A stretch of DNA of 64,000 nt from Penicillus capitatus. Its lineage: Eukaryota; Plantae; Chlorophyta. A program made the translations under genes and the position numbers. Positions 3 to 64,000 of this stretch are shown piece by piece; positions within the stretch are counted from its first letter, which is position 1; each line of letters begins with the position of its first letter. The DNA is taken from positions 524,113 to 588,112 of the forward strand of contig OZ287703.1 of the NCBI GenBank assembly GCA_965649825.1, written 5' to 3'. The notes under the pieces are model-generated. The model was not told the origin of the DNA, made no database searches, and saw nothing but the letters and a program-made list of their open reading frames with translations.

Positions 3-3000
3 ATCGTTCAGCTATGCAGAAACCTCGGAGGACCACTTTCAGAATATTTTAAAGACATTTCAGAAAAAGAGGAGAAGATTGTGAAATACTTCTGTCAAAA
101 TCCAGACAGACTGATCTCACAGACAAAGGGATTCATATCGCACTCCACGTTCACAGACTGGAAATCGAGAAAAGCCTTTATCAAAGATATGTGCTCTGTT
201 CTGGACGCCGTGTTTTGCATTCTTGATGTGCAGTTCAGAAACCGCAATCAAGAATTCGAGCGCATCAGAGAGCTTTTTCAGAAGACCTCTCAGATCAAGC
301 ATCTTCTGTGCTGTTTCTTTCCTTTGGAGAAAGAGGCTTTTGGAAAGGGAGCCAGTGTCTTGGGGGATTGCTTGAGTCGCAGCAAAGATCGCGCTGTCAG
401 GTACAATCTTCAGAAGAGGCTGTCGGAAGTCATCTGCGAGGCGGACACCAAGCTCTCTTGTTCCATCGTCAGGTTGATGAGGAGTGCAGATGCATCGACA
501 GCTGAGAGGAACAGAACTGGTATTGCTTTTGCGTTGAGCGCACTGGACTGGAAGACCACTCTGCTTCTCCCTGAAAGCTTGCTGGTCTCTGCACATGAAG
601 GTTTCTGTGGCTTAGAGATCCTGGATATCCAGAGGAAGTTCAGCAGAATGAGAATCTTGGAGGAAGTGTGCCAGTTACTTGCCGGGTTGTCACTTCAGAG
701 TAATGAAGGCTCGTCTAGCATAATTAAAAGTGCCGCGGAGACAGGCTATCGAGTAGTCCAACAGTTGACGCTGGGTGTGAGGCAAAAAACAGTGAACCTG
801 GGACAGAAAGCAATGAGTTTCTTTAGAAGAACGAACTCAAATTCTTCGGGTCCATCGACGTCAGATGCACATGAAACCGAAGAACACGATGGAAATGTCG
901 AGTTGGTGCACGCCGCCGCGGAACGATTGGATCCCATACTGCAATCATCAGATAGCAGCATGGTATTGTTCGATGAATTAAACACTGCAGTTGAATTCCA
1001 CAATGACATCATGTCTTACCTGCTTGAAGATAGGAGGAGAAACAAGAATGCTGCATTGACAAGAAGCATTAAAAAATGCGGCGAGCTTCTTGATCGTCTC
1101 CGTTGCTCTTCCCAGAGCATTGCTAAGAGTGAATTCTGCCTACCCTGGATTGCTCTTTTCGAGTCTTCAGTCAAAATCGACGTCCCATACAAGGTTGTGA
1201 GACGCTCTCAAGAAAACTTGCAGAGGGAGATCTTTGAGGAAGAAGGTTCCACGAGTGCTGCACTTCTGGTTGGCGAACTCGACCTAGGCACTTGCCTGTC
1301 TGAGCTGGTCTCCCTTGTACTCTTCGAGAAAGAAGCATCTGGTGCTGACTATGAGAAGACACGTGTGAGTGTGCTCCACTACACATGGAGTGAAGAAAGC
1401 TCATCTAACAGAAAGTGGATCGAACAATGGATGCAGAAACATGAAAACACCTACACCTTCTCTTTCTCTGACAAGAAACTGTTACCTGTCGACTCTCTTC
1501 CCAGACACCGTCTTTCGAGACTAGGCATTACGATTATTGCGTGTCTCTCCACTTTGGCGATTCATGGAAAAGACGGTGGAGCAGCGGGAAAGAGAGCCAG
1601 TGATGTGAAGCAACGATTCATCTCCGGTCTGGAGAAGCAGATGACTTCTTACTTGAGCGAAGTAGAGCTTTGGTCGAATAAGGAAGATGATAACTTGTTC
1701 CATCACCTGGTTCAACTGGATGCAAGCCTTCTTCGCAGTCAGAGGCAAGGACTAACTGCCACCAGGAGAGAATTGAGTGGATTTCTTCGGGCATTCTCCG
1801 ATACGAAGCTATCGATCGAAAAGTCGAAGATAGAAGAGACGCTTGATGCCATAAAGGAAAAACTGCTGTCGTCTGGATGGCAATCGACATCAATTGCCTA
1901 CAGCTTCAGGAACTTGATGGTAAAACTGGCGGATTACCCTGTGCAAGAAATAACCTTATGCCTGAAAGGGCTTCTTCGACAAGCAGAATCCAGATTTGGC
2001 GATTACTTCCTTGCCATGGACATGATTGCCCCAGTTTTGAAGCTCAAGGAACTCATGACAGAGTACGCAGCAGAATGTCTTGATGCTAACGATTCGAGCG
2101 TCTGGAAGAAGTGCAACGATCTGTGTTACTTTGTTTCAGAGGTCGTTAAGTACTTCATCGACTTTTTGATTGTGAAAGATGACAAAATGGAGCTCAACAG
2201 AGCAAAACCTCTTGAGGATTTCGATCAGTGGCATGAAGCTCTAGATAAGCTCATAGCTGAACTGGAGATTCCTGCGAGTCTATTGCAAGAGAACGACCTT
2301 GAAAACATCTTCTTAAAACTGAAGAATAAATACAAAAAGCAATTGAAGGAAGAAAACAGAGAAGCAAACTTTGCAAGGACAGGCCTTCTCGGTATTCAAG
2401 CTAAAGAAGGCTCTACTGACGGATCCATTGTGCCTGAATCTAAGGCCGAGATTCAGGCGAGCAAAGTGGCAGGCCTAAAAAGCGGATTCCAAAATCTCTG
2501 GAAGAAAGCGAAGAACCAATCTCAGCCGGCAACGTTTGTCATGCAAGAGGCAATAAAGGCTGTTCAGGTACTGGATCGTTTGAGAGGAGATGAACTGAAC
2601 GACATCACTCTCGCGAGATATCAAAATAGATTACAAAATCTCCGAATAGAGTTAGACAAGTCGCAACTGGAAGAGATTAGCAACAGAAAAACAACAATAT
2701 CAAACGAGCTCGAGGATCTTCTGTCGAAGAGGCCGAATTGCATGAACACTGCCGATTTCTCATTTGCGCACCAGGACCCCGAAAGATGCAGCTCATCTGA
2801 GGATCAGCAATTTCAGACACAACTGCGCCAGTTGGAGGAAGCCGTTTCCACAAAGTCAAGCACAAAGGAAGAAATCGAGTACTTGATGCATGTGGCATCC
2901 AACTATCAGAAGCATTCACTGTTGCAGCAAGCACTCGAGGTTCTCTGCCAATGCTGCAAGCCGCAAAACACAGAAGAGGGCAGCCGAGAGTTAAGAGAAC

Positions 3001-6000
3001 TGTCGGGTTTGCACATCTTCTCTGATCAACTCACCAATTGCTTGGCGTTTGAAGCAGACCGAGTTTCATACAATGAGCTGATGAACTGTGCAGTTGCTGA
3101 ACTATCCCAAATGCGAGCACAGTATCTGGTCGAAGAGTATTATGATCTGTTGGTTGGGTGGAAGTCCGGAAAAGTGGGGAGATCTCTGAAAGCCGTTGTG
3201 GATCTGTGTTCTGCTGAACGCTTCTCAATGCTGCATGCCAATACAACATTGGAGGAAATAGATGGTTGCATTAAACAGCTGCAGAAATGTTTGGCGTCGT
3301 TGACAGCCTTGAGTGAGAGTGGCCTCTGTTTCGCAAGCCCGAGTCTCTCCGTGGAAGACGTTGCTGTTCTTTTTTCAGCCAGTCCTGATTTCTTGCGCAG
3401 TTTCCTGCTGAATCCAGTAAGAACCAGCGAGGAAGACTCTGTCCCTGTGGAATTTGATTCCTCAGCAAACCAGCAGGGAGGGCTCCTGTCAATGCTGGCC
3501 TATCAACAGGAAGATGGCTCTTTGCTTCCAGTTTTCAATAGATCGTCTGGTGCAGACAGATTCCTGAAAGCTATGAAGAATGTCGTTGTCGATGAATGGG
3601 GAGAGAATGTCAGTCAAGATGAAGATGATCTTGCTGTGCAAGAAATCTTTGTTGCCTTTCACTTTGTCCTGATGTCTTTCGTATTTTCGAGACAAGAATC
3701 CAGTCATTTGGAATCGACTATCAAATTGGCGCCTTCTGAACCATCACAGAAGAAAATGAATGACCTAGAAGCACTCATCGGTCGTTGTCAAGAGAGTATT
3801 GATAATGACCGAACTCGACTTTCACAGAAAGGACTTGAACAAGAGAGGGGCACATCACGGCTTCGACGAGTGGAGGAAAGTAACGTAAAGAGGCATATTG
3901 ACAAAATCCAAGACGAAATGGAGAGAAAGCAAGAGGAACTGGCACAAGCAAGGGAAGAAGCAGACTCGCGTCGATCTGAAATTTGTCACTTCCTGACGAG
4001 GTCGCTACAAGATTTACTGGCGAAGGCTTTGCAGTGTTTCTGCAAAATTGTGAGATCGAACACACTAGAATTACTTTTGAGGGACGGTAAAGCGGTGTCA
4101 ATGAAAACTCCGTATTCATTGTGCAAGTCCGTCGTCCACGAAATCTGGAATTCCACATGCAAGAGAAGAGATGCAAGTTATGAAGCCAAGGAAGAATTCG
4201 AGCAATGGCAGCAGTCGTACACTGAGTTCTGTGAAGAACACTTGGCACGGTTGTCTAGCGAAGATCCACTAAGAAAGGCTGCCGAGATTCTGTGCAAGTG
4301 TGCATTCATTGGAAACCAGCGTACACTTCAGCTCATGTCTTCCGCGTCCAAATCTCTCACCATACTTGATACTTCGTTGATAAGCGCCGGGGAAAAGGCA
4401 AAGATCCTTGTGGAGAGGCTTACGGACATGTGCATCAATGACTTCGGCAATGAAACTGTGATAGAAGAATTGTCTGAAGACCTGCTGAGTTTGGAACACA
4501 AATGCAGAAGCCTTGGAGAGGAATGTGAGGCAAATGATGCCATTTGCCTTGATCTGGCTTACCTTAGAAACTTGATTCTGCACTCTGTCGGTTGCTGCTG
4601 TTCTTATGCCCACAGAATGCATCCAATGAACTGGTATGAAGATACACTTCTGCCAAGGTTGGCGGAATCTGTGAAGGAGACGGTCCTTCTTTCGATGCCA
4701 TCTTCTGATGAAGAAGAGTTAAAGGCAGAGATGAAATTGCTTCCATGCTGTTGGGCAAGCCACACGATGTCGCTGCAAACCAGTATCGTCGAAGACACTC
4801 TTGTGAATCCCTTCCGACTCATATACATCCTTGAACAGTTTTTTGCTGAGAGTGCTCCACTTTATCAGTCAGTTTCCTATGTTGGAAAGCACTTCATTGA
4901 CGGGGTTCTGGAACTAAAAAACAAACTGGGCGACGTTTCTCCGACAAACAATGTTCCCATCCTTACCTCAGTCGAGTGTCAGAATCTCGATCTCCTTGTA
5001 ACGCAGCTGCTGGAGATGTGCGAGGAATCGCTTCCTGCAATGACAGCAGAGCAGACACACCAGAGATTCGCCAAGCTTTCGAAGAAGACCCTAAAATTGA
5101 CCAAAGTGATGATCCAAACAAGGAAAGACCCAAGAGCTTACATGGCAGGTTACTTGGGAAGAGTTTGTGAGCAGTGGTGGTACGAGGCCACATCCATGTG
5201 TCTACAGAAGCTCCCGGCAGAACATGAATATGCCGTCGAAACGCTCAGTCAAAGAATCTCCGACACTGGATCCGATGTGACTGCTCTGCAAGGTCTCTTG
5301 CAGTTGTCCGATTTCAGAGATCTCGGCAAACTAAGGGAAATCCTTCGCAATGAAGGAATGGATCTTGCATCTGCCAAACTCAGTGACCAGCAGATGAGCT
5401 ACCTTCAAGTCTTTTCTTCTGTCTTGAGTGAACTTCCTTTCTGTGCAAGACCAAGACTGTTGCATAACTGGCAAATGTGTCAAACATTTCCAAGTGCCAG
5501 AATTCCTATCCAACAGTATGATAAGCTCTTGATGGCACACAGAGGTCTACTCAGGACACATGTGCCGAAGATCCTCCGCTTAAAAAGTGCAGTTGATAAA
5601 GAAACTGAAATGGTCATCAAAAAGGCTTGCAGTGTGCCGCATCACTTGTGCAGTGGAATTGGTCAGGATGTTGCAAAACTTTTGCAAAGATTGCAGTCTG
5701 ATATCCAAGAGGTGGTTGAGAATGCAGATACCCTTAACGAAGAATCTGCTTCAGCACGCAGAGACTACAATAAGAGCGTTGCTTCATTCCTTGAAGAGCG
5801 CCATAAGAAAAGAGAACGAACTCAGCAAAACTTGTGGCAACGGGTTCGTTCTCTGACACAACGCCGACAAGATCTTTTCCCAGAACTAGCAGAAACTGCG
5901 AGAGATCTTTGTTCGCATTATTCTGACCTCTGGAGGGTGGCTAGTCGTTGTTTCAAACATGAAGGAATTTCTGACTGGCATATGCAGGAGAGCAATGGAA

Positions 6001-9000
6001 TTTTAGACTTAAGCAGATCGCTAAATGATGTACTGCAGAAGCAGCAAGTCCTTTATCAAGGAAAACACGTCGCCGATTGTATCAAACTTGCAAGATATAA
6101 ACTGAAAAGAGTTGTTACCCAGTTGGACATTTTGTCTCTGGATCTGGATTCTTTTCTCCGGTTCGAAGACGCAATGCTCCAGATCGAAGTATCCGAAGGA
6201 GGCACAGGGGAAGTAGTTTCTGTGCGTTGTGAAGATGAGTTAAAAAAGCTGCTGCCCATCTCCTACGCTGTCGCAGATATAGCGCGCTTTAAGCTTAGAC
6301 TGGGATTCACAGGAAAAGACAGAAAGGAGTTCGTTAGAAAGTTCAAGTTGAGAGACATGGACAAACCCGTAACTTTTCAAGTCGGCCGGTTCAAATCTGG
6401 GAATAAGAAAACCATTGTGAGCTTCCATGCCATTAAGAGAACGACGATCGTTGGAAGCGATGCTTCTCTGCTGTCAGAAGCATCCTGCTCAGAATCCTGT
6501 TCAGACCCTTTGAATGACTTGTCAGCAAGAATGCACAGTCTCCTTGCAGATTACGAAAATCATTATGAGGAACTGCAGAAGAACATTCGACAGAAAAATG
6601 ATGCCGAGAAGGAAGAGAAGGAAGTATCTGCCCATTTAGAAACAAAGAAATCCGAACGGATTTCCATCGAGACAAGTTCGCATACGCGCATCATCGAGCA
6701 GTGGAATGGTATCCTTGGAGAGATTGTAGTTTCAGTACATAAGGCACAATCCGACCTGATGACCGCAAGAAGACCTCAGACTGTCAATTTGATCAACAAA
6801 GAAAATGAAGACGGCTTGAAGAGAATTAACGACGCAATGCAAAAAATGCAGGAATTGAATTTTGATGAGAGAAAATTGTCTGTTGTGGAATTCGACTATG
6901 CTGGCGAAAAACTGTCCTTCGTGTGGACTTCGGATATGCGATTGGCTTTCATGCAGATGAAGAAATGTGCGGACGACATGCGGCGGCTAGGGGAAAGGAG
7001 TCTTGAACTGTTATTTGCTGCAGCTCTTCTTGAGTTGTTCCAGTCCAGTCTTACGATAGTCTCGAAGAAAGACTTAATCAACCTTGAAAGGGCACTGCGA
7101 GAGTGGAGAGACATACTGGGAGACAGTCCCATGTCACTCAATCAACAAGAAGCCATTGCCTTCAAAGCTGAAAACCGTTGCCGCTCTGCATTGTCGCTTG
7201 CCGATGCCAGAGTCCAATGCATGATGTGCTTCGAGTATATCAGAGAAGAACATGAAAGAATTATTCTTTTAAACAGGAGAGACAATCTTTTGCTTCCAGG
7301 GACCAAACTGCACCACAGCGCCAAGCTCATTGTCACGCAGTCGGACACAGGGATCTGCATACTTGACCCCAGACATAACAGTATTGATTTTGGAACACAT
7401 CTGTACGCTGCAGATGACAAGAAGGCTGGATCGAGGGCACACGTGTGTATTGTGGAAGTGGTGAACCGTACCGCTTCGACGATGATTGTCTCAGTGGATC
7501 CCGTGAAAGGGTCATCTAATGGGTTCGCTGTTCTTGCCCCGAGTAGGGTCCGTCTCTATGGGAGATCGACTCATCAGTTTTCGTTCCGCATCAGTGACAA
7601 GGCAGTTGGAAGAATCTGTGAGCGTTGGAGAATCGAATCGCCTGAAACAAAACTGAATGATTTCTTCGAGCTTTGCGCAAACATCCAGAGACTGGCTGTT
7701 CAGCTCAGTGCAGAGGAGATGGATTTTGGAGTCCTGCTGGCGAGCTCACAACGACAGAAGCGCAAGATCTTCATCAGGAATGTGACAGACCTGCCCTTGT
7801 TGATCAAGAGCCAGATCCAATCCGACAATACCCGTTGCACACTCTCCATGTCGCCAGAGAAGATGTTGTTGCTGCCAAGAGAAAAACAATCTCTGGAATT
7901 CACACTGAAACCCAGTGCCACTGAAGAGAAGGTCGAATCCACTGTCGTCATCGGAGCTGTGCAGAGCTTTAAGTACTTGAAGCTGAAAGCGAAAATCAGT
8001 CGACCAAGATATGCGTTCTTGAATGAAATGCGCAAAGAATTCGATGCTTTGTATGAGATGAAAGCTGTGAAAAAGGGCAAGAAAGCCACAGGTTGCCTCA
8101 GTGTGAAGAACGAAGGGGATGTTCCAGTCGTTTTTAACATCGACTCAAAATCATATGCATTGAAGATTAAACCCTCTGCTGGAAGTGTACCTGTTGGCAG
8201 TGAAATTCCAGTAAACTTGAGGATGAGATGTCCTGACAACTCAGATGTCCTCAGGATTCAGGCAACCGTGTCTGTAAAGGGATGCCAACAAAGACAGCTG
8301 ACGATCAGTGGAAGGTGGATAGATCCCATTCCCACTTTCACCAAGAAGAATGTTGAATTCAAGACTCTGACAGAGCAGCTTGTGCATATGGTAAAGAAGG
8401 ATGAGAGATCGCTGGAGCTCACTGCTCGAAACAAGCTCATCAACAAGGATGACATTCCCGTTACTGTCTATCCACCAAAAAGTGATGACTTCACCTTTAA
8501 TCAGCCCCACTACAGCTTTGAACGAAAGGGAGAGATCGATGTTGAAATGAAGTGGACAGTGAGACGGCTCAAGAAGCAAAAGCACACTGTGACCTTCCTC
8601 ACAGACACAAAAAAGAAACTGTCTTTCAAAGTGCATCTTTCATTGACAGTCGGGAAGCTCGAGATCACTCCAACGAGATGGGTGCGACTAAATTCAGTAA
8701 AACCCGGAGAAACCATGCGAAGAGATATAAGGATCAATACTGATCATCATCAGTTTTCCATTCTCAACAAAGCCCCCCAATCCGAGCTGATCGAGACCCT
8801 TTCACTGGCGGAACTTCATAATGGATGCCCGAAGAAAGATCAGAAGCCCTGGCTGCTTGGATCAGATGACATGTCCACAGTCTTTCGCTCGTCGAAGCAG
8901 TTTGAAATCTGTGTGAAAGCAAAAGAAGGGACAGGCTGGATAGTGGAAGACTTGGCCTTCCAGACAGAACAGGCCGTTTTCGTTCACGAAGACCCGGAGA

Positions 9001-12000
9001 GATGTCAGTTGATGCAGCAGAAGTTAACGATCATGGCTCCTGTGTCGGCCACATCAAATGCATTAGCCAATCTGATGCAATCACTCAAGAAATCTGGTGG
9101 GTACGTGCTAGTAGGCAAGTATACAGCCTTCTGCCTTCCAAATCTAGAGATTCTGAGCGAAATGAGCTCTTCTCCGTCCACAGCACAGTCCTTTCTTCTG
9201 ATGATACTGTGCGAAGTCGAAATCCTCCAGAAGGAGTGGAAGTTGACAACAGAACTAGCACGTCGTATTCTCGGCAGCGATCCCGACGATGCAGTCTCGC
9301 TCTGCGCTCGTCACTTGAAGCACTTGGAACAATCACCAAGAGGGAAGGCTGGCCCATCCTCTGATCTTGCAGACTACTTTGGGAATCTCAAAGATCACTT
9401 CGAGAAGAGAGGTCACGACGACATGTCCGACATATGCATTCCTGTGGCTGCTGTCTCGAATGTTCCGGTCAATATCCAAGCTGTGGCTCAGGCGATGTAC
9501 ATGCTGTTGCATGCAGACTGCACAGAGGAGCAACAGTGGAAAGCCGCTGTCGCTGTGATGAAGACAACCATTCCTGATGCCTTTAGTGCCACTCAGTTTG
9601 ACAACACGTGCGAGGCCATTGCGGAGTTGCTTGATAATCAAGAATCGACGCTTTGCGACATATTGACTCTGTTGAAGAGTTTGATGCTCTCTGATGATGA
9701 GGAAATCGCTTCTTTTGGATTCACCACAAGCATTATCGAGAGTATCCTAAAAACCGATGCTGGCTCAAGTGTTGACACAGTCATTGCAGATTTGCTTCCA
9801 GAAGATCGCCAGCACAGAGAATTCATAATGCAATCCTTATTGCTGAACAAAGATAACAGAAAGGACACGTTGCTGTCTCTTGTCGGCAACCGTATGAGGG
9901 ACTCAGTGAAGCAATTGTGCTTTGGTGATCCCGAGGCTATCGTCACAGGATTCTGTCGTCTTGTGAAGGAAGACGAGAACCAGATCAATTGCAACATGAT
10001 GCGAGATCTAGTCAGAGGGTTGTCTGAAACGGGTAACCAAGAAAAGAGACCACTGACTAGACATCATGGCGATTCTCCCAGCGAAAAAGCAAAGAAGAAG
10101 ATTGAGCCAATACTTCAGGGTGCTCAACTGGAATCTGTGTGCGATCCAATCTGTGCTCTTCATAGATGCGAGAGTGGAACAGAAAGGAATCACAACGTCC
10201 GGAGGGTTGTCGTGGAAACGCTCTTTGGTGTCTTCCCTCGTCTTCCTGCTGGTCGCCACGAACTTCTGAGGAAGATCAAGTCGGCTGCCTTGAGGATATC
10301 TGATGGATTCTATCCGCCAAGCTCTCGGAAGAAGGCGGCGGACGTAATAGAAAAAGAACTTGAGTTTGTGGAAGTGAAGCATCGCTCGAAGCTGAGAGAC
10401 TTGATGATGCAGTGGATCCAGCTGAAGCCACGCGACGTTGGCATTGATCTTATGCTGAAACCGTTGATAGAGACGCTGCGAGAACTAATACCAGTGGATG
10501 AGGGCACGAGCTCTGAGCCATCTCGTGTTGATCTTCAGAGCATCGAAGAATCGCTGATCGAGGCATTGACCAGACTGGATCCTGTGGCCATTTCTCACAC
10601 AACACATCCTCACGATCTGCTTTCGAAAGTCGTCAGCTTTATTGCCGTGTTGAATAAGAATTTCCCAGAGAAGGTAGTCGAGCTCGCAGATAAGCTCTCT
10701 TCTCTGCAGATGGGTCCAACAAAGGAAACAGCAATACGCGCTTGCGGACCAATCTCTGAAGAACTATCGACAGACGCATTTAAAACAGTACTGGATCTTT
10801 TGGAAGAAGATCTTGATGATGAAAATCTTGAGAAAACGATCCTACATCTCATTCTGCCGCAGCAAATTACTGAGGCTTTTGACACTCTCGTCGAATCTTG
10901 GTCTGATGTTGATTCAGACGTGAATGGAGAAGAATTGCTAAAGAAGATCGAAGAAATCAGCGAACCGGCTGTGATGTCCGCCTTTATGCTTGTTGGCGAC
11001 GTGCTGAAAGCAAAGAACTCGGTCACACACATGGACGAATCACAGATGGAGTCCATCGAAGGCCTTCTTAAAATCAAGAAGCTCTTCGATTCGCTTTCCG
11101 CTCTGGGTTGTTGGGAGAAGAGAGAGAAGAGTCAAGCAGCTTGGAACATTCTCCTGTCTGCAAGTGCCATTGGACACAAAGCCGAACTGACATTTGAAGG
11201 CCACTGTCTGGTCAAGATGTCATTGCTGCTGTCCCTGGCCCAGTTCTACGGAAAAGAACATTGGAAGGAACGAGAATCACCATCCTGTGAAGATGACAGA
11301 TGTCTGAAGCTTGAAATCGCTGATGTGCCAGAGGAGTCGCCTTCCGAAGACAGTGGTGATGAAGAAGCAGAATGTGAGGAAATCGCATCAAGAGACGAGG
11401 AGAAGATACCTGCAGACGAAAACGAAGCAACTGCCGTTTCAGAAGATGGCGAGTGGCACTGGCTGTTGGAAAATTTCGAAGTACCGGAGGATCAGCTTGC
11501 ATCCCTAAGAAACGAAAACTCAGGAGAGACGGAGATGTCAGCTACCGAAAGTGGATCGACTGTTCAAGAAGATGACGTCAGTGTTGAGAGCAGCATTGGA
11601 TACATGGAGAAGCTCGCCAAAGTCGAAGGCATTCTCGAAGCAGTGATGAAGAGCGTAGATAATACATCAGCGTCACCCAGTGAAGACTCGTCACTCAGAG
11701 CTCTCACATTCGATCACATCGTGGATAGCATCGCAAAAGTGCAAGCAGCTGCAGACTCTTGGAATGAGGTATTCGAAGAGGCAGTTCGTCATTCCCATAT
11801 TCCAAAGAAAAAAGAAGACAAGAATGCTGATAGCCGAGTCGTATGCGCAGGGCTGTCCCTCATCTCTCAAATTCAGTTCTTCAAACGATACTTGGAGCGC
11901 TGCACTCTCTTTGAGATTCCGGGATTTGTGAAGGATGCGCTTGACGGCATTGTGCAACATCTGAATGCCATCCCCAAGAGCAACTCGCTAGCAGAGTTTG

Positions 12001-15000
12001 ACAAGATCCTCAAAGAGTTTGGCGCGATGAGTGTCGCGAAAGGACGCACAACAGAAGACTTCCCATTGCCATCACGGCAAGGGATTCCTTTTCAAACTGA
12101 AAAGAGTAGTCCCTGCGGAGACGAAAACCAACGAGCACGCGGCCATTCCTCTTCTTGTGCTGAAACAACAAGTAATGCGGAGGATGCCATGGTAGTCGAT
12201 ACCACACACAGAGGCTTTCTCCAGGAACTGAAAAACATAGTTTCGAGTTGCAGTTTTCAGTCTATGTCGGCAGTGAGACTGCAAAGTGTGGAAGGCCAAA
12301 AGATTGTTCTGCAGGCGGGTAAGGAATTGCAGTCTGGGAGATTTCAAGAAAGGGAAACAAAAGTGCAATCGTCCGTGATGGAAGACAGGAAGATTAAAGA
12401 ATGCAGCAAGATCAAGCTTCCTTCTGTGATTAAGGGAAGCACACATCGATGTGAGCAAGCTAGACAATTCAGTCAGAATAAGGGCAGTGCAGCTAAAAAA
12501 GATCAGGGATTTGATTTCTTCGCAGATACTGCAGAGGATGGGAGAATGGAAACATTTCAAGCATATTTCGATATTGATGAAAAAGCAATGCCTCATAGTG
12601 TCAGAGATGCTGATCTGGCAGAAATCTACAAAGACACTACTATTACAAGGGCTGATGTTGAGAGGATAGAACCAAACGATCCAGTCTCGGTTGACAGTCC
12701 CCATCCCCCACCTGACAGATGGACTTACCGTTTGCTTATTAAAAGCAAACCATTTGTGCGTTTTCTGGTGGAAGTCCTTCACATGTGGGAAGCTCACTTT
12801 GAGAGATTCTATAGATCGACAGCCGAGAAACACAAAATTGAGTGGTGCATTCTTGTTGACAATTCAGGATCGATGATCACCAAAGATATCGAGATGACAG
12901 AGGCTCTTGTTCTTGTGATGGAGACACTGAGGCGACTAGAGCAGCCGTTTGCCGTTGCTCGGTTTGGAGACCGGAAGTCTCAACAGATGCTGAAGATGAT
13001 GAACGAACCCTTCACGCAGCTTATTGGGCAGAAGATTCTTGAATCTTTCTCTTTCGACGAAGGCACTTATCCTGCTTCAGCTGTGAGGCATGTGGCTGAG
13101 AAGGTTTGGCCAAACTGCTTGTCCGAGAGCGACAGACTGCAGTGTCACCGAGTGATGCTTTTGATCATGGATGGACTGACACAAGAAAGATCTCCAGAAG
13201 ACTACACATCCATCTGCGACGAGAGAGAATTCGAACTTGTTGTCTTGAACTTGAAAGACGAAGCGCAGAAGGAGATTATGAGCCAGATTGAAGGGTTGTG
13301 GAGTAATGCTGCCTCTTTTTATGAAGTGCTGGACGTGCAATCAGTTGACCTTTTGCCGCAGTTGTTGGCTGGACTCATGATTCAGTACATGAAAAACACA
13401 CTCTCAAATATAGAGAAGAACAGATATCAGCTACGCGGTATTGAACAGCCAGGTGTCCAGGCTTGTTGTTTCGAAGACGTGAAGCTCAGCGTGGATGAAT
13501 CTGTGCTGTCATCAGATCTCAAGAAGCAATGTCTTCCTAGACTGCCTGGAGACTTCAGCAAGAAGAGCTTCTTCGACTGTGGATGCGAGACTGATGGAAT
13601 CCCGTATGCAATTGAGATGCGAAATCTGTTGAGCACAGACCTGGACCTTGATGGTGTTGCACTGGATCATGTTGAGAGAGAGCTTCTCGAGTTGCATCAA
13701 AGTCTACAGGTCCTACCAGAAAACAAGGATCATTTAAAGGAAGCTGAGATTGCTTGGATGAAAGCCGAAGAGTGGTTGAGTGTGGAGATTGCACATATGG
13801 CGGAAGCACTCGAAGGATTTCTCCCACAGAATCGCTTCACGAGGAAGAGGGCCGACATTCAGGGTCCATCCATCCATCTTCCAGGATTCATCAAGCACAT
13901 TGCGACTCAAGGCAACGAGAAGAAGATCTTCGCGAACAAGAAGGGAGGAGGGAAATCTGAGTACTCTGTGGCTGTCCTCCTGGACATCTCTGCGTCGATG
14001 GCGCAGGGTAGAAAGCGTCCATGTGCACTGCAAACAGTTGTGATGCTGATCAGTGCTTTGAAGCAGATGAACATCGAAGACTTCTCAGTCATTCTGTTCG
14101 GTGGCGGCATCTATCCGATCAAACTGCCAGACGATGTCTGGGAAGCATCTTCTATGGCCTTGCTCTTCTCTGCAGTCTTGCATAGAAACGAGCTCTCTAC
14201 CATGGATGCAGACGCTCTGCTCTTCGCTGCGCAGCTGCTCGATCAGAGCAGTGTCAGAGGACCAAAGAAGATGTTTGTCGTGACAGATGGATACGGGAGT
14301 TCGGGAGTTAGGTTGGCAGGCGTGCTCCACAAGATTGAAGAAGATCTGGGAGTCGACGTGTTGGCGATGGGCGTCGGTCCAGAGGAGTTCTTTGTCAAGA
14401 AATGCTATCCCAAGTGGATTACTGCCGCGTTGCCTCAGATGGTGCCGGATGCATTGGAAAGCATGTGCGACAGAATGGAGGGCGCAGCCAAACTGCAGCA
14501 GACGACCCAAGAGGACAACGCCGAGTCGCAGACGCTTGCTTATATAAAAGAAGGAGCGGCCGAAACTGTAGAAGAAGTTCTGAGAAACAGGGAGATCTTG
14601 TTTCCTGATTTACTGAAGGATATGAAGACAGAACGAGAAGCCAGGCTTCGGCGAGGGAACAATGCTTCTACTTTCGAAGTGGACATCTGTTTTGTCATTG
14701 ACTGCACGGGATCCATGAAGAGTTGGATAGATGCCGTGAAGCAGCAGATAGAGGTAAGAATGAAGAACTAATGTTCGATCTGAGATGTATGTTCACTATA
14801 GTTCGTCGCTGAGCACATATCGCATAAGATTGAAGAGAAGCATCCCAAAATAGAACTGAAGCTCCGCTTTGCAACACTCGCGTATAAGGATTTTGGAGAT
14901 GACGACAGTTTGATTCTTTATCCATTCACCGACAGCGTACAAGAGTTACAATACGCTCTTCAAGAATTAACGGCGGAAGGCGGTTCCGACTTACCAGAGG

Positions 15001-16101
15001 ATGTGCTGGGAGCTTTGAAGTATGCAGCTGACCTTGACGATTGGCAGAGCAACATTCGATTCTGTGTACTGATTGGCGATGCACCTGGACACGGAAGAGA
15101 TCTCAACGACCTCGATGACGACAGGTTTCTAAACAATTTGTCTTTGTACACAATGTGAGACATTTGTGATCAGGTACCCAGATGGAGATCCAACTGGACT
15201 GACGGCAAGCAGTGTCATGGCGGATCTGAAAGCAAAGGAGATCCACTTACTCTTCTGCAGGATAACGCACAAAACAGACAAGATGGTCAACGAATTTGCG
15301 AGACACTACAATGACGGCGTGAAGTTTGAGTTGACATTGAAGGATGTGTTTGGAGACTGCACAGTATGCACCTCGGTATACTTGAGACTGAATGTCTTAA
15401 TTGTGTGCATTTCTGCCTGTGTAGGCTGATGTTCAGACAGGCTTTCACACCGTGTTGTGTCTGGACGAATCTGGGTCAATGGAAGGACAACCTTGGCAAG
15501 ATGTCTGCAACGCTTTTCAGCAATTCTTAGCGAAGAGAGTGCTCAATCAGGCGACATCTGATCTTGTCAGCGTCATTCAATTCGATCACACGGCCAACAT
15601 TGTGATGGAAGGAGTACCACTTCAATCAAATCTGGGACTTCTGGATTACCATGGCGGAGGAACACATTTCATTCCCCCGCTTATTACTGCATTAGAAATT
15701 CACCTGCGCAATCAGACTGCTCATACGCCCGTTCTCATTTTTATGTCAGATGGAGAGGCTGCGGATCCGCACGATGAAATCATATATGTAATGAGACAGC
15801 TCGTTCAATACTGCCCATCACTAGATGTACACACAGTAGGATTTGGACATGGTGCATCACACTCTCGATTACAAGTACGTAACATTTTTACATGGTGTCA
15901 GATTGTTGACCATTCGACTGTTGTCAGGAAATGGCAGCCGAGGTTGGGGGACAGTATCACCAGGCTATCACAGGAATCGATTTGTCAAACGTCTTTTCGG
16001 ACATTTCGGATAACTTGAATACAACAGATGCACTTACTTCTCAGTTTGGAAAAGTGATCGGCGACATGGTTTCCTCTGCCATCATTCTTGGACATCTCTG
16101 A
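3..16101 (+). CDS. Giant multi-VWA protein, paralogue A (5'-partial, >=5,295 aa): helical/coiled-coil region, C2-like domain, ASH/PapD-like Ig array, acidic spacer, four VWA/MIDAS domains
   Basis: The frame is open from nt 3 (IVQLCRNLGG...) with no stop to 14753. Exons are 3-14753, 14802-15124, 15174-15363, 15425-15874 and 15928-16101, joined by GT-AG introns of 48, 49, 61 and 53 nt. MIDAS motifs are EWCILVDNSGS, VAVLLDISAS, DICFVIDCTGS and VLCLDESGS, each with a downstream acidic partner motif (MDG, TDG, GDAP, SDG). It is colinear with the gene at 52194-63999. Confidence 0.88.
13911..14223 (+). repeat. Left arm of a ~94% identical inverted repeat (VWA2 core); partner at 54081-54393
   Basis: Manual codon-by-codon comparison with the reverse complement of 54081-54393 gave 20 mismatches in 313 nt and 4 amino-acid changes. 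Confidence 0.9.
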
Positions 16102-20078: not shown

Positions 20079-22144
20079 ATGTCGAACACCGCCACATCGA
20101 GTCTCGCTGCCAGTCTTGCACGCAAGGCGAAACAAGTCAGCCACCCACGGGGTAGCTATCGGCCTAGTGCATGACTGTTCGCCATGGTAGGTGCTGGAAA
20201 CCAAGACGGACGATGAGACATTGTTGCAATCACTGACGGCGCTGTCATCGCTCGAGAATGCAGATGTCCATGCAGCCGCGATGCCACATCAGCTGCAATC
20301 TGCTGTTGAGAATGGGACAGTTCAGTGCGCTATGCAGCTACTGCAGTTAGCTGAGGGGGTCTCGGATCAGCTGACGCTTCTACAGAAGAGTGTAGATCAA
20401 TTGAAAGGCGCATCGCAGCAGATGCGACACGAACTCGATCTCTGCTCTGCCCAGACGCAACCTTACCTCGCTTCTATGCAGAAACTGGAAGCTGCTGAGA
20501 AGATGAACAAGGAAAAGGAGACACTCATTGACGATTTCTTGCAGCGATATCAGCTGCTGCCGGATGAGGCGGCGCTTCTGGAAAGTGGAGAGGTGTCCGA
20601 AGCGTTTTTCCGTGTGCTGCATCGTGCGCAAAGCATTCATGCCAACTGCAAGAATCTCCTCCGTACACAACACCAACGCGCAGGGTTGGAGCTGATGGAC
20701 ACGATGGCACGCTACCAGGAAGCTGCCCTGAAGCGACTGGTTGAATGGATTCAGATCAAATGCCAGGAACTCGTCGACGTCGAAGCAGCAGAATTGGACC
20801 CCTTGATGCAGCAAGCCCTACAGTCACTTTCAACACGCCCAGTGCTCTATCGTTACTGCGCAGAAGAGGTTGCCGAAGCACGACACGACGCTCTGTTCGA
20901 GAGATTCGTGAGTTCTCTTTCCCAAGGACCACGTCCGATCGAAATGCAGTCGGATGATCCAAAACGATATCTCAATGATATGTTGGCATGGGTCCATCAA
21001 GCACTGGCATCGGAGATCGAACTGCTGGAGCTGCTCTTTAAGGACGTCCAACGCGGGGAGAATGTATCGGACAGAGATCTTCCGTCGATCACAGACTTGA
21101 TGAACAAAATCTTTCAGGGCATCGATCGGCCGTTGAAGGTCAGAATCGAACAGGTGTTGATGCTGCCGCCGCCACCTGTGCTCTGCTTCGAGCTGGGATG
21201 TCTACTGGAGTTCTACGTCGGCGTGATTCGGGATATCGCTGGAGAAGGATTCACATTGGTCGAGAGTTTGCAGAGCTGCCTAGACATGAGCGTCCGAACC
21301 CTGCATGAACAGATCCATGCCCGTGGGATTCGACTAGTACGGCACTCTATCGTTGCCCCCAGAGATCTGACACCGCCTACCGAAGTCACAGAAGCGATAC
21401 AGTTTCTCCTGCAGCTGCTGAATGCGCACGAGTCTGCTCTGAAAGTCACGGAACATCAAGAGGGACTGTCCATCGCTAATCTCGCAGCATCTGTGCTGGA
21501 TCCACTACTCCAGACGTGCACGAGATGTGCCAGTGAATTGGAGAACAGTGCGCTGCATCCGGAGAGCACCGTCAAGCCTCTTCTGTCGAAACACATCTTC
21601 CTCATCAACTGTCTGGAAACGCTAGTCACATCGTTTCACGACCGATCTGCCATCTCACGCAAATGTTCTGAACTGAGCACTCAACTCGAGGTGCCGATCG
21701 TCGTGAGCATTCAACGGGTTCCATTGTTGTTTGTTTTTGAAGGATTGTGTGAAGAACTGTGCCAAAGAAGTCGCTCAGTATCTGCTCGTGCAGTGTGGTC
21801 TCTCCGTTGTGCTGCATCGAATGGAAGAATACAAGGTACATGGAACGAGTGGCCGGCAGATGGCAGAAGATCCAGCGCTTAGTCTCACAGCCATTTCGCA
21901 GGCAATGAAGGCATACTTTAACCTCATCTCCACCCCCGATGCCCTGCCAGAATTCACAGAGATCGTGGATGCGGACATCAAGCATGCACTGTTTATGAAG
22001 ATGTGTCTGACGTTAACAGAAGCGTACGAACAGGTCTACAATGCCGTTATGGATCCTGAAAACAGTTATGGACCTCCATCGACCATTCATCTCTACATCG
22101 AGCATTCTCCCGAACACATTCGGACCATTCTGTCTGTCGAATAG
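20079..22144 (+). CDS. COG6: Conserved oligomeric Golgi complex subunit 6
   Basis: Exon 1 MSNTATSSLAASLARKAKQ joins VLETKTD. Motifs FLQRYQL, CKNLLRTQHQRAGLELMDTMARYQEAA and PRPIEMQSDDPKRYLNDMLAWVHQALASEIE. A second intron lies near 21.69-21.74 kb. Confidence 0.92.
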
Positions 22145-40877: not shown

Positions 40878-41387
40878 GGCTTATTACGTTCGAATGTCGA
40901 TTTCTGAGATGCACACATTTCGAAAAGAGCTTTAAACCCCCTCATCCAAAACATCACTCACTAATGCAACGTGCTGACATACGACTTTGACAATATGTCT
41001 ATACTTACTCACTAGCTGTCGTTTCATTGTTGTCTCTCTCTTCACTTCACTGTGCGTAATTTCATTCAAGTGCCTTCGTGTGATGGCCTGTTGACGTTTT
41101 GGATTGATTGGGTTATTGATGAGATTCTTATCGTTGTTGTGTTGATGATGATTGAAAAAGCTGAAGGAATAGGCGATGTGTCTCCCTCTCCTCTCTCTGC
41201 ATTCTGATTCTGATTACGAGAATGGATGGATACTGAGTATCAACCAGCAAGATTATGTGTTGTGATACGCGTGTCATCGACTGACGGCACTTACTAGATT
41301 ACTGATTAGGCTCTATAATGTTTATTGACCTTAGCTTAACACCAAGGGTGTTCTAGTGATTTGTCGTACATTGATCGTCCTGTCGCC

Positions 41388-52193: not shown

Positions 52194-55100
52194 TCAAAGA
52201 TGTCCTGTAATGATAGCCGAAGCTACCATATCTCCAATCACTTTTCCGAATTTTGAGGCCAAAGCATCCGTTGCTGACGAACTGGCTGCAATGTTAACGA
52301 AAGCGGTCGATAGATCCACTCCCGTCATCGCTCTGTGATACTTTCCACCAACGATGGAAGCCATATCCTGAAAAGCACGAACGCCTCGGCCATTGAACAG
52401 TGAAGCTGCTGATAGTGCCGTTACCTTTAGAAGGTCATGTCGTGCAAGAGGTCCAAATCCGATTGTGTGGACGTTCATTGGGCCATAGCTGTTATAGATT
52501 TGTTCCATTCTACCAGGTATCCGTCTTTTACCGTCACCAGATGCTCCATCCGACATAAAGATGAAGACAGGAATCTCGTGCCTCTGTCGATAGGACAGGA
52601 CTTCTTCGGCAGCGTCCAGTGCAGGATGAAACTTTGTACCCCACTTCGGAATTGAAGACAGTCGCACATTCCCAGTCAACGGTTCTCTGATGCATGTTGT
52701 GTAGGCGTGATCATCAAACTCAATAAGGGTGATGACGTCTCTCTTTGACTGATCTTCTATTCGCTTATCTAGGAATTGCTGCAAGGCTTCCTTCAGATCT
52801 CTCCATCGTCCACCTTTCATGGACTTTGATTTGTCCAGACAAAACACAAAGTGGTAATGAAGTTGCGCATTATCCTGTCAAACAACTTTGTGAGAAACTG
52901 AGAGCGCAGGTCACGACGAACATACCGATGCATCGCCGAAGACGTCTTTGGAAATCAAATCAAATCGCCCATCTCTGTTGTAGTGTCTGGCAAAGCAACC
53001 GATCATTCTGTCCGTGTCAGGTGTGATTCTGCAGAAGAGGAGATGAATATCCTGTTCCATTAAATCCGCCATGAGACTTTCTGCTGTGATATGAGGATGA
53101 CCTTGAGGGTACCTATTGCAGAACCAGCATCAGCATTGGAAGTTTAGTGAATAGCTAGTCAGCTGGTCGAACCTGTCATCACTGCACGTGTTGAGTTCAT
53201 GTCCATGGCCAGGGGCATCGCCAATAAGCACACAGAATCGCACTTGGCTTTGCCAATCTTCCATCAGTGCAACAGCGTTCAGCGCTCCGAGCACATTTTC
53301 AGGCGTATCTGATCCGCCATATGCCGTCAGAGACGAAAGGAAAAGAGAAAGCCGCAGAGGATCTGAAGAGAATGGATGGATCTTTAGACGATTAACGTCT
53401 CCATAATCTCTGTAGGCCACCATGGCGAAACGGAACTCCAGTTCCAGATTTGTATATTCTTCTTTGAGTTTCTCGGAAACCATCGTCGCAATGCCCTGCA
53501 AAAATTAGAAGTGTATCATGTTCAATGCCGTCAGTCACCTAATCTGCTCTTACCTTAATCTGCTGTTTGGCAGCGTTTAGCCAGAACGACATAGAACCGG
53601 TGCAGTCCAGGGCAAAACAGATATCCACTGTTATGGCAGATGGCCTGTTGCCTCTTGTAAGCCGAGCTTCTCTTTCTGACTCCATCAACTGCAGTAAATC
53701 TGGAAAGACACCCTCTCTGTTCACCAGAACTTCTTCGAACGTATTCGCCGCTCCTTCTGGAACCAGCCCGACACTGAGCCAGTCGATGGTATCTTTCTGG
53801 TAAGTTCTCTGCATCCTTGCTGCATTCTCCATTCTATCTGTCAATGTCTCTAAGGCGTTTGGCACCAGTTGAGGCAACGCAGCCGTAATCCACTTGGGAT
53901 AACATTTTTTGATGAAGAACTCTTCTGGGCCAACACCCAATGCTGTCACATCCATTCCTGATTCGTCAAGTTCTTTCAATACTGCTGCCAGGCGAATGCC
54001 AGAACTTCCATACCCGTCTGTCACCACAAATATCTTCTTTGGTCCACGGACGCAGCTCTGATCAAGCATTTTCCCTGCAAAGAGCAGAGCATCTGCATCC
54101 ATACTGGAGAGCTCGTTTCGTTGCAGGACTGCAGAGAAGAGCAAGGCCATCGAAGGTGCTTCCCAGACATCGTCTGGCAGTTTGATCGGATAGATCCCAC
54201 CACCGAACAGAATGACTGAGAAGTCCTCGATGTTCATCTGCTTCAGAGCACTGATCAGCATCACAACTGTTTGCAGTGCACATGAACGCTTCCTACCCTG
54301 CGCCATCGACGCAGAGATGTCCAGCAGGACAGCCACAGAGTACTCGGACTTCCCTCCTCCTTTCTTGTTCGCGAAGATTTTCTTCTCGTTGCCTTTAGTG
54401 GCAATGTGCTTGATGAATCCAGGCAGATGGATGGATGGACCCTTGATGTCGGCCCTCTTTCTTGTAAAGCGATTCTGTGGGAGAAAGCCATCCAGTGCTT
54501 CCACCATGTGATCAATCTCTGCACTGAATCTCTCTGAAGCGTTGAGCCATGTGTCTTCAGTCGCTCGTAGCTGATCCCTCTTCTCTGTCTGTGTTTGCAA
54601 ACCTTGGATCTCGCCGTACAGATCTTCGTCCAAAACACTGTCCAGAGTCACATTCACGTGTTCCAAGGCAGCCGTTTCTGTTCCGAAAGGAATTCCGTCG
54701 GATGAGAATCCACAGTCAAAGAAACTTTCCTTCGGATAGCTTCCTGGCAAAGGCGGAAATGGTTGTTTTTCTAATTCTTTCAGGAGTATTCCTTCATCAA
54801 CATGCAGATTGGATCCAGAGAGGTCTGTTGCTTTCGGAGGATCCTGTTGGATAGTCGACAGCTGATTCCTGTTCTTCTCAATCTTCGAAAGCGTGTTCTC
54901 CATGTACTGAATCATGAGTCCAGCCACCAGCTTCGGCAGCAGATTGATGGATTCTATGTCCAGCACTTCATAGCAAGATGCAGCTTCACGCCACAAGTCT
55001 TCAATCTGGCTCATCATCTCTTTCTGCGCTCTGTCTTTCAGATTCAGGACAACAAGATCGATGTCTTTATCGTTGCAGACAGAAGTGTAATCCCGCGGAG

Positions 55101-58100
55101 ATCTTTCTTGCGTCAGTCCATCCATGATCAGAAGCATCACTCGGTGGTACTGCAGTCTCTCCTTGTCAGACAGTCGCTCCGGCCAAACCTTCTCAGCCAC
55201 ATGCCTCACAGCTGAAGCTGGATAGGTGCCTTCGTCAAAAGAGAATGACTCCAGTATCTTCTGCCCAATAAGCTGAGTGAAAGGTTCGTTCATCATCTTT
55301 AGCATCTTTTGAGACTTTCGGTTTCCGAAACGAGCTACAGCAAACGACTGCTCCAGTCGCTTCAGTGTCTCCATCAAGAGAACAAGGGCCTCTGTCATCC
55401 GGTTCTCTTTCGTGATCATCGATCCTGAATTGTCAACCAGAATGCACCACTCAATCCTGTGTTGCTCAGCCGTCAAACGGTAGAATTTCTCAAAGTGCGC
55501 TTCCCATCGGCGCATGACCTCCACCAGGAAAAGCACAAACGGTCGGCTTTCGACAAGCAAAGAATACGTCCATTTGTCATGACGGACAGGGTCGACCGAG
55601 AGTGGATCCTTCAGTTCTATCTTATCAACATCTGCGTTGATAACATCCGTCCCTTTGTAGATACTAGCCAGGTCCTGTTTGGCAACTTGCTGTCGGCTCA
55701 TCTTCACTTGGCGATTGAAATCTGTTCGTATGCTTAACATGCTCTTGTCTTCAGGCGCAGCGTCAAAAACTTCGTACTCTTGAGCCAGATTTCCAGCATT
55801 GTTACGCCTATCGCCAAATCCTCTTTTGTGTTCACTTGATGGAGCATTCATCGCTGTCAGCTTGGACAGATCAATGTCATCACAGTCCATGAGATCATCT
55901 TCGTCTGTCGAGGATGACGCGTCATTATCTCGTGTTCTCCTATTCGCCTTCCATGCCGCAGTATTACCACAATCGTCCGGAAGAGTGATCTGCTGATTCA
56001 GGATTCCTCGCTGCGTTCTTCCAGATGTCGGCTCTGCTGCACGTGAAGCAGCTGCATCCTTCAATCTCTTAATCAGATCTGCATTGGCATCATCGTTCAT
56101 CGCTGTTGGGTTCACATTCACGCCCTCGAACGCAGTGTAAGATCTAGAGCTTGGTTCTCCAGAACTGCTACCGTAGCAAGCAGTGTCTTCCCTTCGAGAT
56201 TGAGTTGTGTGCTTCTTCATTGACGGCATCGGAAAATCTTCTGTCGTGCTGCTGCGCACAATGGTCGTCATTGCAAGTTCATCAAAGATCTTCCTGAACT
56301 CCCGCGACAGATTATTTCTGGGAATCGCATTCAGGTTCTGTATCATGCTGTGATGGATCTCTTTCAAGAATTCAGGCATCTCAAACAAACTGCAGCGCTC
56401 CAGGTATTGCTCACAGAATCGCAGCAAATAGACAATCGAAAGGCCTGTGCAGACGACACGACTTTCGGCTGTCTTTTCATCCCCGTACTTCAAACTGCGA
56501 CAGCGACGTACAGATTCCTCAAAAACCTCTATCCAGTTTCCTGCTGTGTCCTTCAAATTTGCGAAACACTCAACGATGGAAGGAAAATCCATTCCATTCA
56601 ACGAAACGTTTTGGACGGTCTCATGATCTGTGAGATGCTTGACCGAAGAATAGACATTTGCGATCATGCCTTCTATTTTGTCAAGCTGATCTCTGCACTT
56701 TATCCAGCCATCCATTTTGTGAAGCAGATCTCTGCACTTCATCCAGCCATCCATCGTAGCATCACCCAATCCTCTGACAAAACGCTGACCTTCTGAAGTG
56801 TCTGGTAGATCGACAGAGTCGTTTTCTTTGGGGGTAACAAGCTGCTCATCCGGTACTGCGAATGCATCCAAAAACCAATGCCATTGGTCTTCACTTTCTC
56901 CGACTGCAATCTCGTTTTCTGGATTTGCTGTTGTGGCAACATTGTCTTCTTCTATCTCAGCACACGTCATTTCTTCTTCGTCACTCTCCTTTTCTGAGAA
57001 CGAAATCTCTGGAAGAACAGCAGGAACCAGTTTCAGACCACTGTCGTCTTTGTCAGAGGACCAATCGTATGCCTCCGAGTAGTCATTGCTGTAGAAGTCA
57101 AACAGAGAGAGGAGCAGAACCATCTTGCTAATGCAGACGCCCTCAAAGGTCAAATCGGCAGTATGAGATGCTGCAACAAGGCCAAACAATACACTCAATG
57201 CAACGCGGCTCCCCTTTCTTTCTTCCCAGCAATCGAAAGTATCCAATGCCTCGATGAGGTCCTTGACATTCAGAAGACCTTCGATGGATTCCAGTTCCTC
57301 TTCGTCCATGGATGTTACTGAGTTTTTCGCCAGGATAAGCTGTTTCAGTTTAGGCAGCATCTCTAGATCGGAGCGATTACACAGTCTTTCCATATTGTCG
57401 ATGAGATCCGCATCAATATCCAAGACTTCATCCACGTCTGGGTTGACCAGGTCATCAAGTATCTCATAGCAGCCGTCTGGCAACATGGCCATCAACGCTA
57501 CACGTTCCAAGTCCTGACCATTGCTTTCAGCCTGGTCAATAACTCCGAGAGCCTCTGCTAACGGTTCCGAAGACAGTCTCTCAGCAATGGTCTGACAGAG
57601 GCTAAGAACGCTATCTTTTGAGAAATCGACCACCAGAGAAGAGAGCCCTGACAAAACTTCTCGTGTCGATGCAGTGTGGTCACCATTTAAGACGGATTTA
57701 AATCCAATTACTCTGCGAATCAGATCCAGAGGGAAGGTCTCAGGCGTGATGGATGGAAGATCCAGTTCGTGCAACGCTTGACAGAGCAGATAGTTCAGCT
57801 GGTCCAAGTCCATCTTACCGGACATTGATCGGTCAGAGCTATTCCGTGGTTTCATCTTCTTTATGGATTCGATCAATGGCTCCACCAGTGCATCCACATG
57901 TTCATCGGCAGGATTAAGGTTTGTCCACAACACCATCTGGCGCTTCACTGAATTTCTCTTTGTGTGATCATTTATCCACTTCAATGCCGCGTCAATGATA
58001 TGCTCATTTCCCGCATGAAGTGCAGGACAGGTTTCACGGGATATCTTGAGAAAGGTATCCTTCATGGATAGGACGGACGGTCCGTATCTGAAGTCGAAGT

Positions 58101-63999: not shown

Positions 64000-64000
64000 T

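Follow-up and report, generated by a model that had tools for sequence, protein, structure and literature searches.

A window of 64,000 nucleotides from Penicillus capitatus (contig OZ287703.1, positions 524,113 to 588,112 of the forward strand) was analyzed, in which two convergent paralogous genes, here called A and B, each encode four von Willebrand A (VWA) domains. [quoted passage not shown] It carries the N-terminal helix with its tryptophan (element I), the long loop that follows it (element II), and an intact metal site. We consider it likely that VWA2 is the MIDAS domain of a giant midasin paralogue, of which the window holds the linker, immunoglobulin-like (Ig) domains, an acidic stretch, and the four VWA domains, and whose AAA+ ring is encoded upstream. 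A sequence-only reading of the same DNA had recognized a midasin-type module but placed it in a non-midasin protein.

VWA2 is a homologue of the midasin MIDAS domain

The peptide that had drawn attention to the module lies on the forward strand, with AWMKAEEW starting at 13752 and the metal-binding motif DISASM at 13983-14000; a second core motif, VVTDGYG, follows at 14277-14297. When the translated interval 13500-14768 was compared by phmmer with all PDB chains, midasins were the top matches (6hyp, 5jcs, and 6or5; E 1.8e-5). These entries represent Saccharomyces cerevisiae Rea1 and Schizosaccharomyces pombe Mdn1, and the alignment spanned the region from the pre-MIDAS helix to the DxSxS motif. 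Among 1.84 billion representative proteins, searched exhaustively with HMMER, 328 were related to the module. E values lay below 1e-30 for 84 of the matches, and a family profile was built from 41 modules. Searched against the PDB, this profile matched S. pombe Mdn1 at 2e-22, S. cerevisiae Rea1 at 1e-21, the human MDN1 MIDAS domain (8ql1) at 8.5e-17, and the Chaetomium Rea1 MIDAS domain at 1.4e-16. The 8ql1 chain carries the label "NDE1" in the PDB table; the entry is the complex of MDN1-MIDAS with the ubiquitin-like (UBL) domain of NLE1 described in PMC11983104. The non-midasin matches of the profile were BatB (1e-7), CobT (2e-6), and integrin (5e-6), and NorD was not detected by it.

An independent line of evidence came from structure prediction. 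The AlphaFold model of the module reached a mean predicted local distance difference test score (pLDDT) of 89.7, and a Foldseek search with this model returned human MDN1-MIDAS first (1.6e-11), NorD (9qhe_G) second (2.2e-11), and then the Chaetomium Rea1-MIDAS structures. The near equality of NorD and MDN1 in this search is what speaks for assigning VWA2 to the prokaryotic VWA partners of MoxR-type ATPases (NorD, CobT, or BatA-like) or to generic VWA domains, with a convergent or chance resemblance to midasin. Such an assignment is hardly credible. By profile midasin was far ahead of CobT, and NorD remained invisible; the element I tryptophan and the element II loop aligned with midasin with a single one-residue gap; and midasin-type rings with midasin lids occur in the same proteins (see below). 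Thus, the proposal that VWA2 is of midasin type was borne out by sequence search, family profile, structural comparison, and the two elements, whereas for clustering with CobT/NorD-like domains, which had been named as an outcome that would overturn it, the near-level structural match of NorD was the sole sign. The evidence supports a Rea1-type MIDAS homologue over a CobT/NorD-type or generic VWA domain.

The pairs NorQ/NorD, CbbQ/CbbO, and CobS/CobT nevertheless share with the family the combination of an AAA_5/MoxR-type ATPase and a VWA/MIDAS partner, and NorQ, CbbQ, and CobS were the next-best matches for the AAA modules of the family. They differ in being separate small proteins with homohexameric ATPases, whereas the family has six modules in a single chain; their sequence similarity to VWA2 is marginal or absent, and they lack equivalents of elements I and II at the sequence level. 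Integrin alpha I and von Willebrand A domains have the Rossmann-type VWA fold in common with VWA2, as well as metal-dependent binding via a carboxylate of the ligand, but they are extracellular, have neither the N-terminal helix and loop extension nor an AAA partner, and matched the family profile only at the level given above.

Elements I and II of Rea1 are present in VWA2

According to Ahmed et al. 2019 (PMC6624252), the MIDAS domain of Rea1 extends the integrin-like fold by three elements of its own. Element I is a long helix at the N-terminus in which one tryptophan is invariant (W4633 in S. cerevisiae Rea1); element II, located between it and strand beta1, is a conserved ~40-residue loop; and element III is an insertion ahead of the last helix that forms a beta-hairpin anchoring the UBL domain. 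The metal site consists of DxSxS together with a threonine and an aspartate that follow beta4. The element II loop docks the MIDAS domain on the AAA ring and touches the top of the linker (PMC6624252, PMC11603028). It also contains a PY-type nuclear localization signal (PY-NLS; KR..IIPY) and shows 84% identity between the midasins of yeast and human (PMC6624252).

Elements I and II were both found in VWA2, and together they are what had been described as a "pre-MIDAS element." The tryptophan encoded at 13755-13757 aligned exactly with W4633 and was at least 90% conserved across the family, and in the model the N-terminal residues 13-47 were helical with pLDDT above 90. Compared with the S. cerevisiae and S. 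pombe loops, element II of VWA2 was of equal length but for the one-residue gap, and it was 28% identical to that of S. cerevisiae. For the loops of the family as a whole, identity to S. cerevisiae was 23-33%, with T-[KR], G, IA[ST]Q, KKI[FW], and K..Y in common. The metal site was intact: the aspartate and both serines of DxSxS were invariant in 41 of 41 modules, as were the aspartate and glycine of T-D-G, and the T/S-x-D motif of VWA2 was conserved in the family modules, its aspartate being invariant.

Two features of Rea1 were not seen. No PY was present in element II of any of the 10 family members examined, the aligned residues being K-H or K-A. Furthermore, the VWA2 model contained no insertion at the place of element III; strand beta5 (residues 225-232) was followed by a short helix (239-242), strand beta6 (246-249), and the last helix from residue 252, and alignments of the family hidden Markov model (HMM) to midasins ended at beta5. 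With moderate confidence, the element III hairpin therefore appears to be absent from VWA2.

Gene A is probably the 3' part of a longer gene

The first-exon reading frame of gene A is open from the window edge to 14771. No stop codon occurs between positions 3 and 81, so the frame extends to position 3, and an open frame of 14.7 kb cannot have arisen by chance. Four GT-AG introns of 48, 49, 61, and 53 nt were read from the sequence. The junction of exon 1 with intron 1 reads CAGCAGATAGAG followed immediately by GTAAGA, the donor at 14754, and homology to the family picked up in frame directly behind the 48-nt intron (14754-14801). The stop at 14769 was considered as the end of gene A and rejected, as it falls inside this intron. 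The spliced product within the window comprises 5,295 residues; gene A ends at 16101, and ILGHL closes the protein. Intron 1 is in frame and contains a stop; open reading frame (ORF) finders and prokaryote-style gene callers would thus cut the protein ~400 residues short. The database entry that corresponds to gene B (P0003) was shortened at intron 1 in the same way.

Relatives of gene A were used to judge what may lie upstream. Over 4,750 residues, the protein P0007 shared 38% identity with gene A, and gene A was collinear with P0007 residues 770-5541, its first residues in the window aligning at residue 770, directly after AAA6 of P0007. The leading 770 residues of P0007 contained AAA_5 and "Midasin AAA lid" domains according to Pfam and matched Rea1 AAA5-AAA6 in the PDB with an E value of 2e-82, residues 296-557 corresponding to Rea1 2042-2287 (AAA6). 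Midasin-type AAA_5 and midasin lid domains were located directly upstream in the same gene in P0007/P0152, P0004, P0005, P0036, and P0038. At L003, the locus of P0152, a protein near-identical to P0007, an ORF of 2,484 aa lies directly upstream on the same strand; it encodes AAA1-AAA4 and matched midasin at 5.9e-83. A short intron that splits the Walker A motif of AAA5 between GAPGIGK and T joins this ORF to the next, and loci L002 and L004 have the same layout. A transcript from Chlorarachnion (P0038, 7,408 aa) was collinear with midasin AAA3-AAA6 (E 1.5e-99). Collinear relatives thus encode a ring of midasin type, AAA1-AAA6, within the gene itself. Given this and the open frame at the edge, we deduced that a gene of ~26 kb is represented in the window by its 3' 16 kb; the whole protein is estimated at ~8,500 aa, and a six-module AAA+ ring of its own would be encoded upstream of position 1.

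In the closest full-length relative (L003:2398-13000), AAA1, AAA2, AAA3, and AAA5 have a canonical Walker A, the P-loop of AAA4 is degenerate, Walker B of AAA6 reads D-N, and ~800 residues precede AAA1. In P0038, an acidic insertion of ~450 aa is found inside AAA4 (residues about 570-1000); in the Chlorarachnion lineage the material rich in aspartate and glutamate (D/E) is in the ring and not before the MIDAS domain.

These results bear on the earlier claim that a midasin-derived gripping module had been redeployed in a non-midasin protein, i.e. that the MIDAS module was cut loose and might serve as a stand-alone UBL gripper in a protein that has no ring. Within the window, Pfam indeed found VWA and ASH-type Ig domains but no AAA domain in the 4,896-aa ORF of gene A, and some members of the family consist of VWA domains without a ring, such as P0057 from the rotifer Adineta (4,370 aa). 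The ORF, however, runs past the window edge, a ring was present in the same gene in every relative with readable upstream DNA or transcript, and the ring-less members are plausibly truncated gene models. In addition, conservation within the module is highest in the loop that docks on the ring, a pattern understandable only if the ring is in cis, and retention of this loop fits a protein that bears its own ring. A ring-less redeployment is accordingly very unlikely, and the notion of a non-midasin host protein was given up.

Upstream of the VWA domains, the linker contains Ig domains of the ASH type known from HYDIN, CFAP65, and Cep192. This region was kept in gene B (about 61000, reverse strand) and in the members from Mesostigma, Adineta, and Bryopsis. 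The acidic spacer that had been noted before the VWA domains is present and is the most acidic portion of the protein; it is short, however, with 60-90 residues, compared with the D/E-rich region of ~600 aa in Rea1 (PMC11603028).

The four-VWA cassette is conserved throughout the family

Four VWA domains make up the cassette, with VWA2 in second position. VWA3 begins in exon 1 and continues through exon 2 (14802-15124) and exon 3 (15174-15363), which are separated by intron 2 (15125-15173), and VWA4 together with the C-terminus occupies the last two exons (15425-15874 and 15928-16101, stop codon 16099-16101). In 26 complete cassettes from distant family members all four metal sites were invariant, and the proteins closed with a conserved LD[HY]L-like motif. 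Both the cassette and its metal sites are therefore conserved family-wide.

VWA1 was also related to midasin. Aligned by hhalign with the MIDAS domains of S. cerevisiae and S. pombe midasin, it gave a probability of 97.7% and an E value of 2e-12, with a common FG...FDxxFS...G motif; the FG...FDxxFS part is clearer in VWA1 than in VWA2. A PDB search with the single VWA1 sequence returned weak integrin matches only, the link to midasin becoming visible with profiles. In the same profile-profile comparison with the two yeast MIDAS domains, VWA3 (E 0.07) and VWA4 (1e-4) were not midasin-like. Within the cassette, VWA1 and VWA2 matched one another best (E 6e-14), suggesting that they arose by internal duplication.

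Gene B and the conservation pattern of the pair

Gene B encodes the same four VWA domains and has introns at the same four positions as gene A. It is identical to the database protein P0003, which stems from a 494,854-bp ENA metagenome contig (ERZ25074695 ctg340373), and is cut by the contig end ~380 bp past the window. The midasin-type modules of the two genes were 76% identical. Along the proteins, identity was 30-40% in the linker but reached 97% in element II, 87% in the core of VWA2, and 81% in VWA1. The statement that VWA2 is the most conserved part of the pair was thus essentially right, considering an overall identity of 30-40%.

Constraint at the protein level leaves silent sites unpreserved. 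At four-fold synonymous third positions, A and B were close to saturation in the linker (identity ~0.3), but identity was 0.61 in VWA1 and 0.73-0.79 in VWA2. Such high silent-site identity in both domains indicates that part of the noted conservation is probably due to gene conversion between A and B. The patch of high silent-site identity extends over 12714-14477 on the forward strand and 53830-55578 on the reverse strand; elsewhere in the gene the value is ~0.3.

The family is widespread and probably distinct from canonical MDN1

Members of the family were found in green algae, cryptophytes, alveolates, rhizarians, and rotifers, among them Bryopsis, Mesostigma, Chlorarachnion, Amoebophrya, Rhodomonas, and the rotifers Adineta, Rotaria, and Brachionus, as well as in metagenomes. 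Database names for them are "hypothetical," "unnamed protein product," "VWFA domain-containing," and "MoxR-like ATPase/YegL." A word-indexed homologue search retrieved two fragments only for the module and nothing for the N-terminal 600 aa of gene A or the family profile, and a full-text literature search turned up no account of a midasin paralogue built in this way. The modules of family members were 28-64% identical to each other but 16-24% identical to those of S. cerevisiae and S. pombe midasin, while the two yeasts were 59% identical to each other.

Midasin was the top sequence match for both the ring and the MIDAS domain of the family and the top structural match for the latter. The two also have in common six AAA_5 modules with midasin lids in one chain (as seen in the relatives), a long helical linker, an acidic stretch, the element I helix with its tryptophan, an element II of equal length, and an intact DxSxS...T...D site. 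On the other hand, the family proteins are larger (~8,500-9,500 aa versus ~4,900-5,600) and occur in more than one copy in this genome. Canonical midasin has a single C-terminal MIDAS domain after a D/E region of ~600 aa; the family has four VWA domains, and in gene A ~470 residues follow VWA2, so that the C-terminal tip is not formed by the midasin-type domain. The Ig domains in the linker have nothing comparable in canonical midasin, the PY-NLS is missing, and the element III hairpin was not seen in the model.

The likenesses could also mean that the gene is simply the highly diverged MDN1 of the organism, acting in 60S biogenesis via Rsa4/NLE1 and Ytm1/WDR12. The order of the parts (ring, linker, acidic stretch, MIDAS) is that of midasin, and midasin is the best match at both ends. 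One MDN1 gene per genome is expected. The window, though, contains two copies that are 30-40% identical, and the metagenome sample held a further family member on a different contig, whose coverage differs and whose organism is therefore uncertain. Element II of the family is poorly conserved relative to S. cerevisiae and devoid of the NLS, which contrasts with the high yeast-human identity given above; element III appears to be missing; and three additional VWA domains and Ig domains are present. Finally, the family occurs in rotifers, the Adineta member having a family-type element II loop; rotifers, being animals, are expected to have canonical MDN1. We therefore regard a sole, diverged MDN1 as improbable. 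An upstream ring in such a gene had been named as grounds for abandoning the original proposal; the relatives do point to the ring, but the copies and the extra domains make a sole MDN1 unlikely. The multiple copies, the extra domains, and the loss of the NLS favor a separate lineage, and genes A and B look like members of a second, unstudied lineage of midasin-type machines.

VWA8 of animal mitochondria is likewise a single chain with dynein/midasin-like AAA_5 modules and a C-terminal VWA domain. With ~1,900 aa and one VWA domain, it differs from the family.

Features of the window

The coordinates are compiled in Table 1. The other genes of the window are ordinary eukaryotic ones with housekeeping roles, and neither tRNAs nor Rfam families were found anywhere in it.

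Table 1. Features of the 64,000-nucleotide window
Feature	Position	Strand	Basis or remark
Partial giant exon of gene A, with linker and Ig domains, the acidic stretch, VWA1 and VWA2, and the start of VWA3	3..14753	+	ORF/translation
ASH/HYDIN-CFAP65-Cep192-type Ig domains in gene A linker	7701..8279	+	Pfam PF22544 (9e-7), PF22067, PF24507, PF15780
Acidic stretch upstream of VWA cassette	11253..11520	+	40-42% D+E, sliding-window composition
VWA1 (DNSGSM 12858-12875)	12714..13409	+	Pfam VWA; hhalign to S. cerevisiae/S. pombe MIDAS
VWA2 element I	13731..13817	+	N-terminal helix with conserved Trp; alignments and model
VWA2 element II loop	13818..13961	+	homologue of Rea1 residues 4657-4696
VWA2 core Rossmann fold	13962..14477	+	Pfam VWA and VWA_2, AlphaFold model, Foldseek
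VWA3 (DCTGSM 14700-14717)	14595..15363	+	Pfam VWA_4 PF25106, 1.2e-10; tblastn of family tails
VWA4 (DESGSM) and conserved C-terminus	15425..16101	+	Pfam VWA_2 1.5e-14, VWA 1.8e-13
COG6	20191-21882		
Kinesin motor	36211-37095		
Rhodanese-domain protein	41361-42128		
Cytochrome P450	46837-47457		
TSG101/Vps23	48278-49270		
MYST histone acetyltransferase	about 49864-51038		
Gene B, convergent paralogue (partial)	52194..64000	-	translation, splice sites, tblastn
Gene B exons	>64000..53554, 53495..53173, 53112..52926, 52874..52425, 52367..52194	-	splice sites
Gene B midasin-type module	53830..54573	-	element I from 54573, element II from 54486, DISASM 54321-54304

Discussion

By analogy with Rea1, VWA2 would dock through its element II loop on the AAA ring and the top of the linker of its own chain and would grip a ligand whose carboxylate completes the coordination of Mg2+. 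ATP-driven remodeling of the linker could then pull on the bound ligand. VWA1, VWA3, and VWA4 might add extra grips, providing valency or binding further partners.

The PY-NLS is missing, the UBL-anchoring hairpin is apparently missing in the model, and ASH-type Ig domains are present in the linker; these features make the Rsa4/Ytm1 pair an improbable substrate and the nucleus an improbable site of action. The suggestion that the module binds UBL or ubiquitin-fold partners is weakened by the absent NLS and the apparent absence of the hairpin. A UBL domain may be the ligand of VWA2, although element III offers no backing for this. On balance, we lean towards an ancient second midasin lineage: six AAA modules in a single chain of 8,500-9,500 aa, Ig domains of the ASH type, and four MIDAS domains that form a terminal hand and of which two derive from the midasin MIDAS, acting outside the nucleus on a substrate other than the pre-60S particle.

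Several points weigh against the assignment to a giant midasin paralogue. The ring of gene A itself was not seen and is deduced from relatives that are 26-38% identical, and the word-indexed homologue searches recovered neither the full product of gene A nor canonical midasins from the same sample. The gene A linker (aa 1-2500) gave no match in the PDB and has no detectable similarity to the Rea1 linker, and the acidic spacer reaches ~90 aa as against ~600 aa. The absence of element III is read from model topology and the end of the HMM alignments rather than from a residue-level structural alignment. The localization is judged solely by the missing NLS and the ASH domains. In a model of the whole cassette each domain was folded, but the predicted template modeling score (pTM) was 0.49, and the inter-domain geometry was discarded.

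The same architecture might instead belong to a fast-evolving conflict or immunity machine whose multi-VWA hand recognizes foreign or damaged proteins. A patchy phyletic spread and a local duplication that combines 30-40% divergence with conserved or converted VWA patches would fit such a role, and at L004:28671-36493 the neighbors of one member encode an ADP-ribosyltransferase, a kinase-TIR protein, and a leucine-rich repeat (LRR) protein. A paper on biological conflict systems reportedly includes prokaryotic MoxR-vWA systems. These arguments are purely circumstantial, gene neighborhoods in eukaryotes say little on function, and the protein showed no effector domain. We thus consider an immune function unlikely and retain the view of a second midasin lineage.

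Midasin is generally treated as a conserved machine with a single job, the pulling of assembly factors off pre-60S ribosomes. If the present interpretation is true, a widespread paralogue has reused the midasin mechanism for a different task. The family combines a ring, a ring-docking loop, and a metal site with three more MIDAS domains and Ig domains of the cilium/centrosome type, and would be a natural comparison for researchers on AAA+ proteins and ribosome biogenesis. The loop was kept while the overlapping NLS of Rea1 was lost, so that the two functions of the loop are separated, as they were by mutagenesis in yeast. Genes of this ~26-kb class are routinely split or truncated by gene callers, and in databases they bear labels such as "hypothetical," "YegL," or "MoxR-like" only. 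If confirmed, they would constitute a third family of giant AAA+ motors with the ring in one chain, beside dynein and midasin and with a cell biology of its own.

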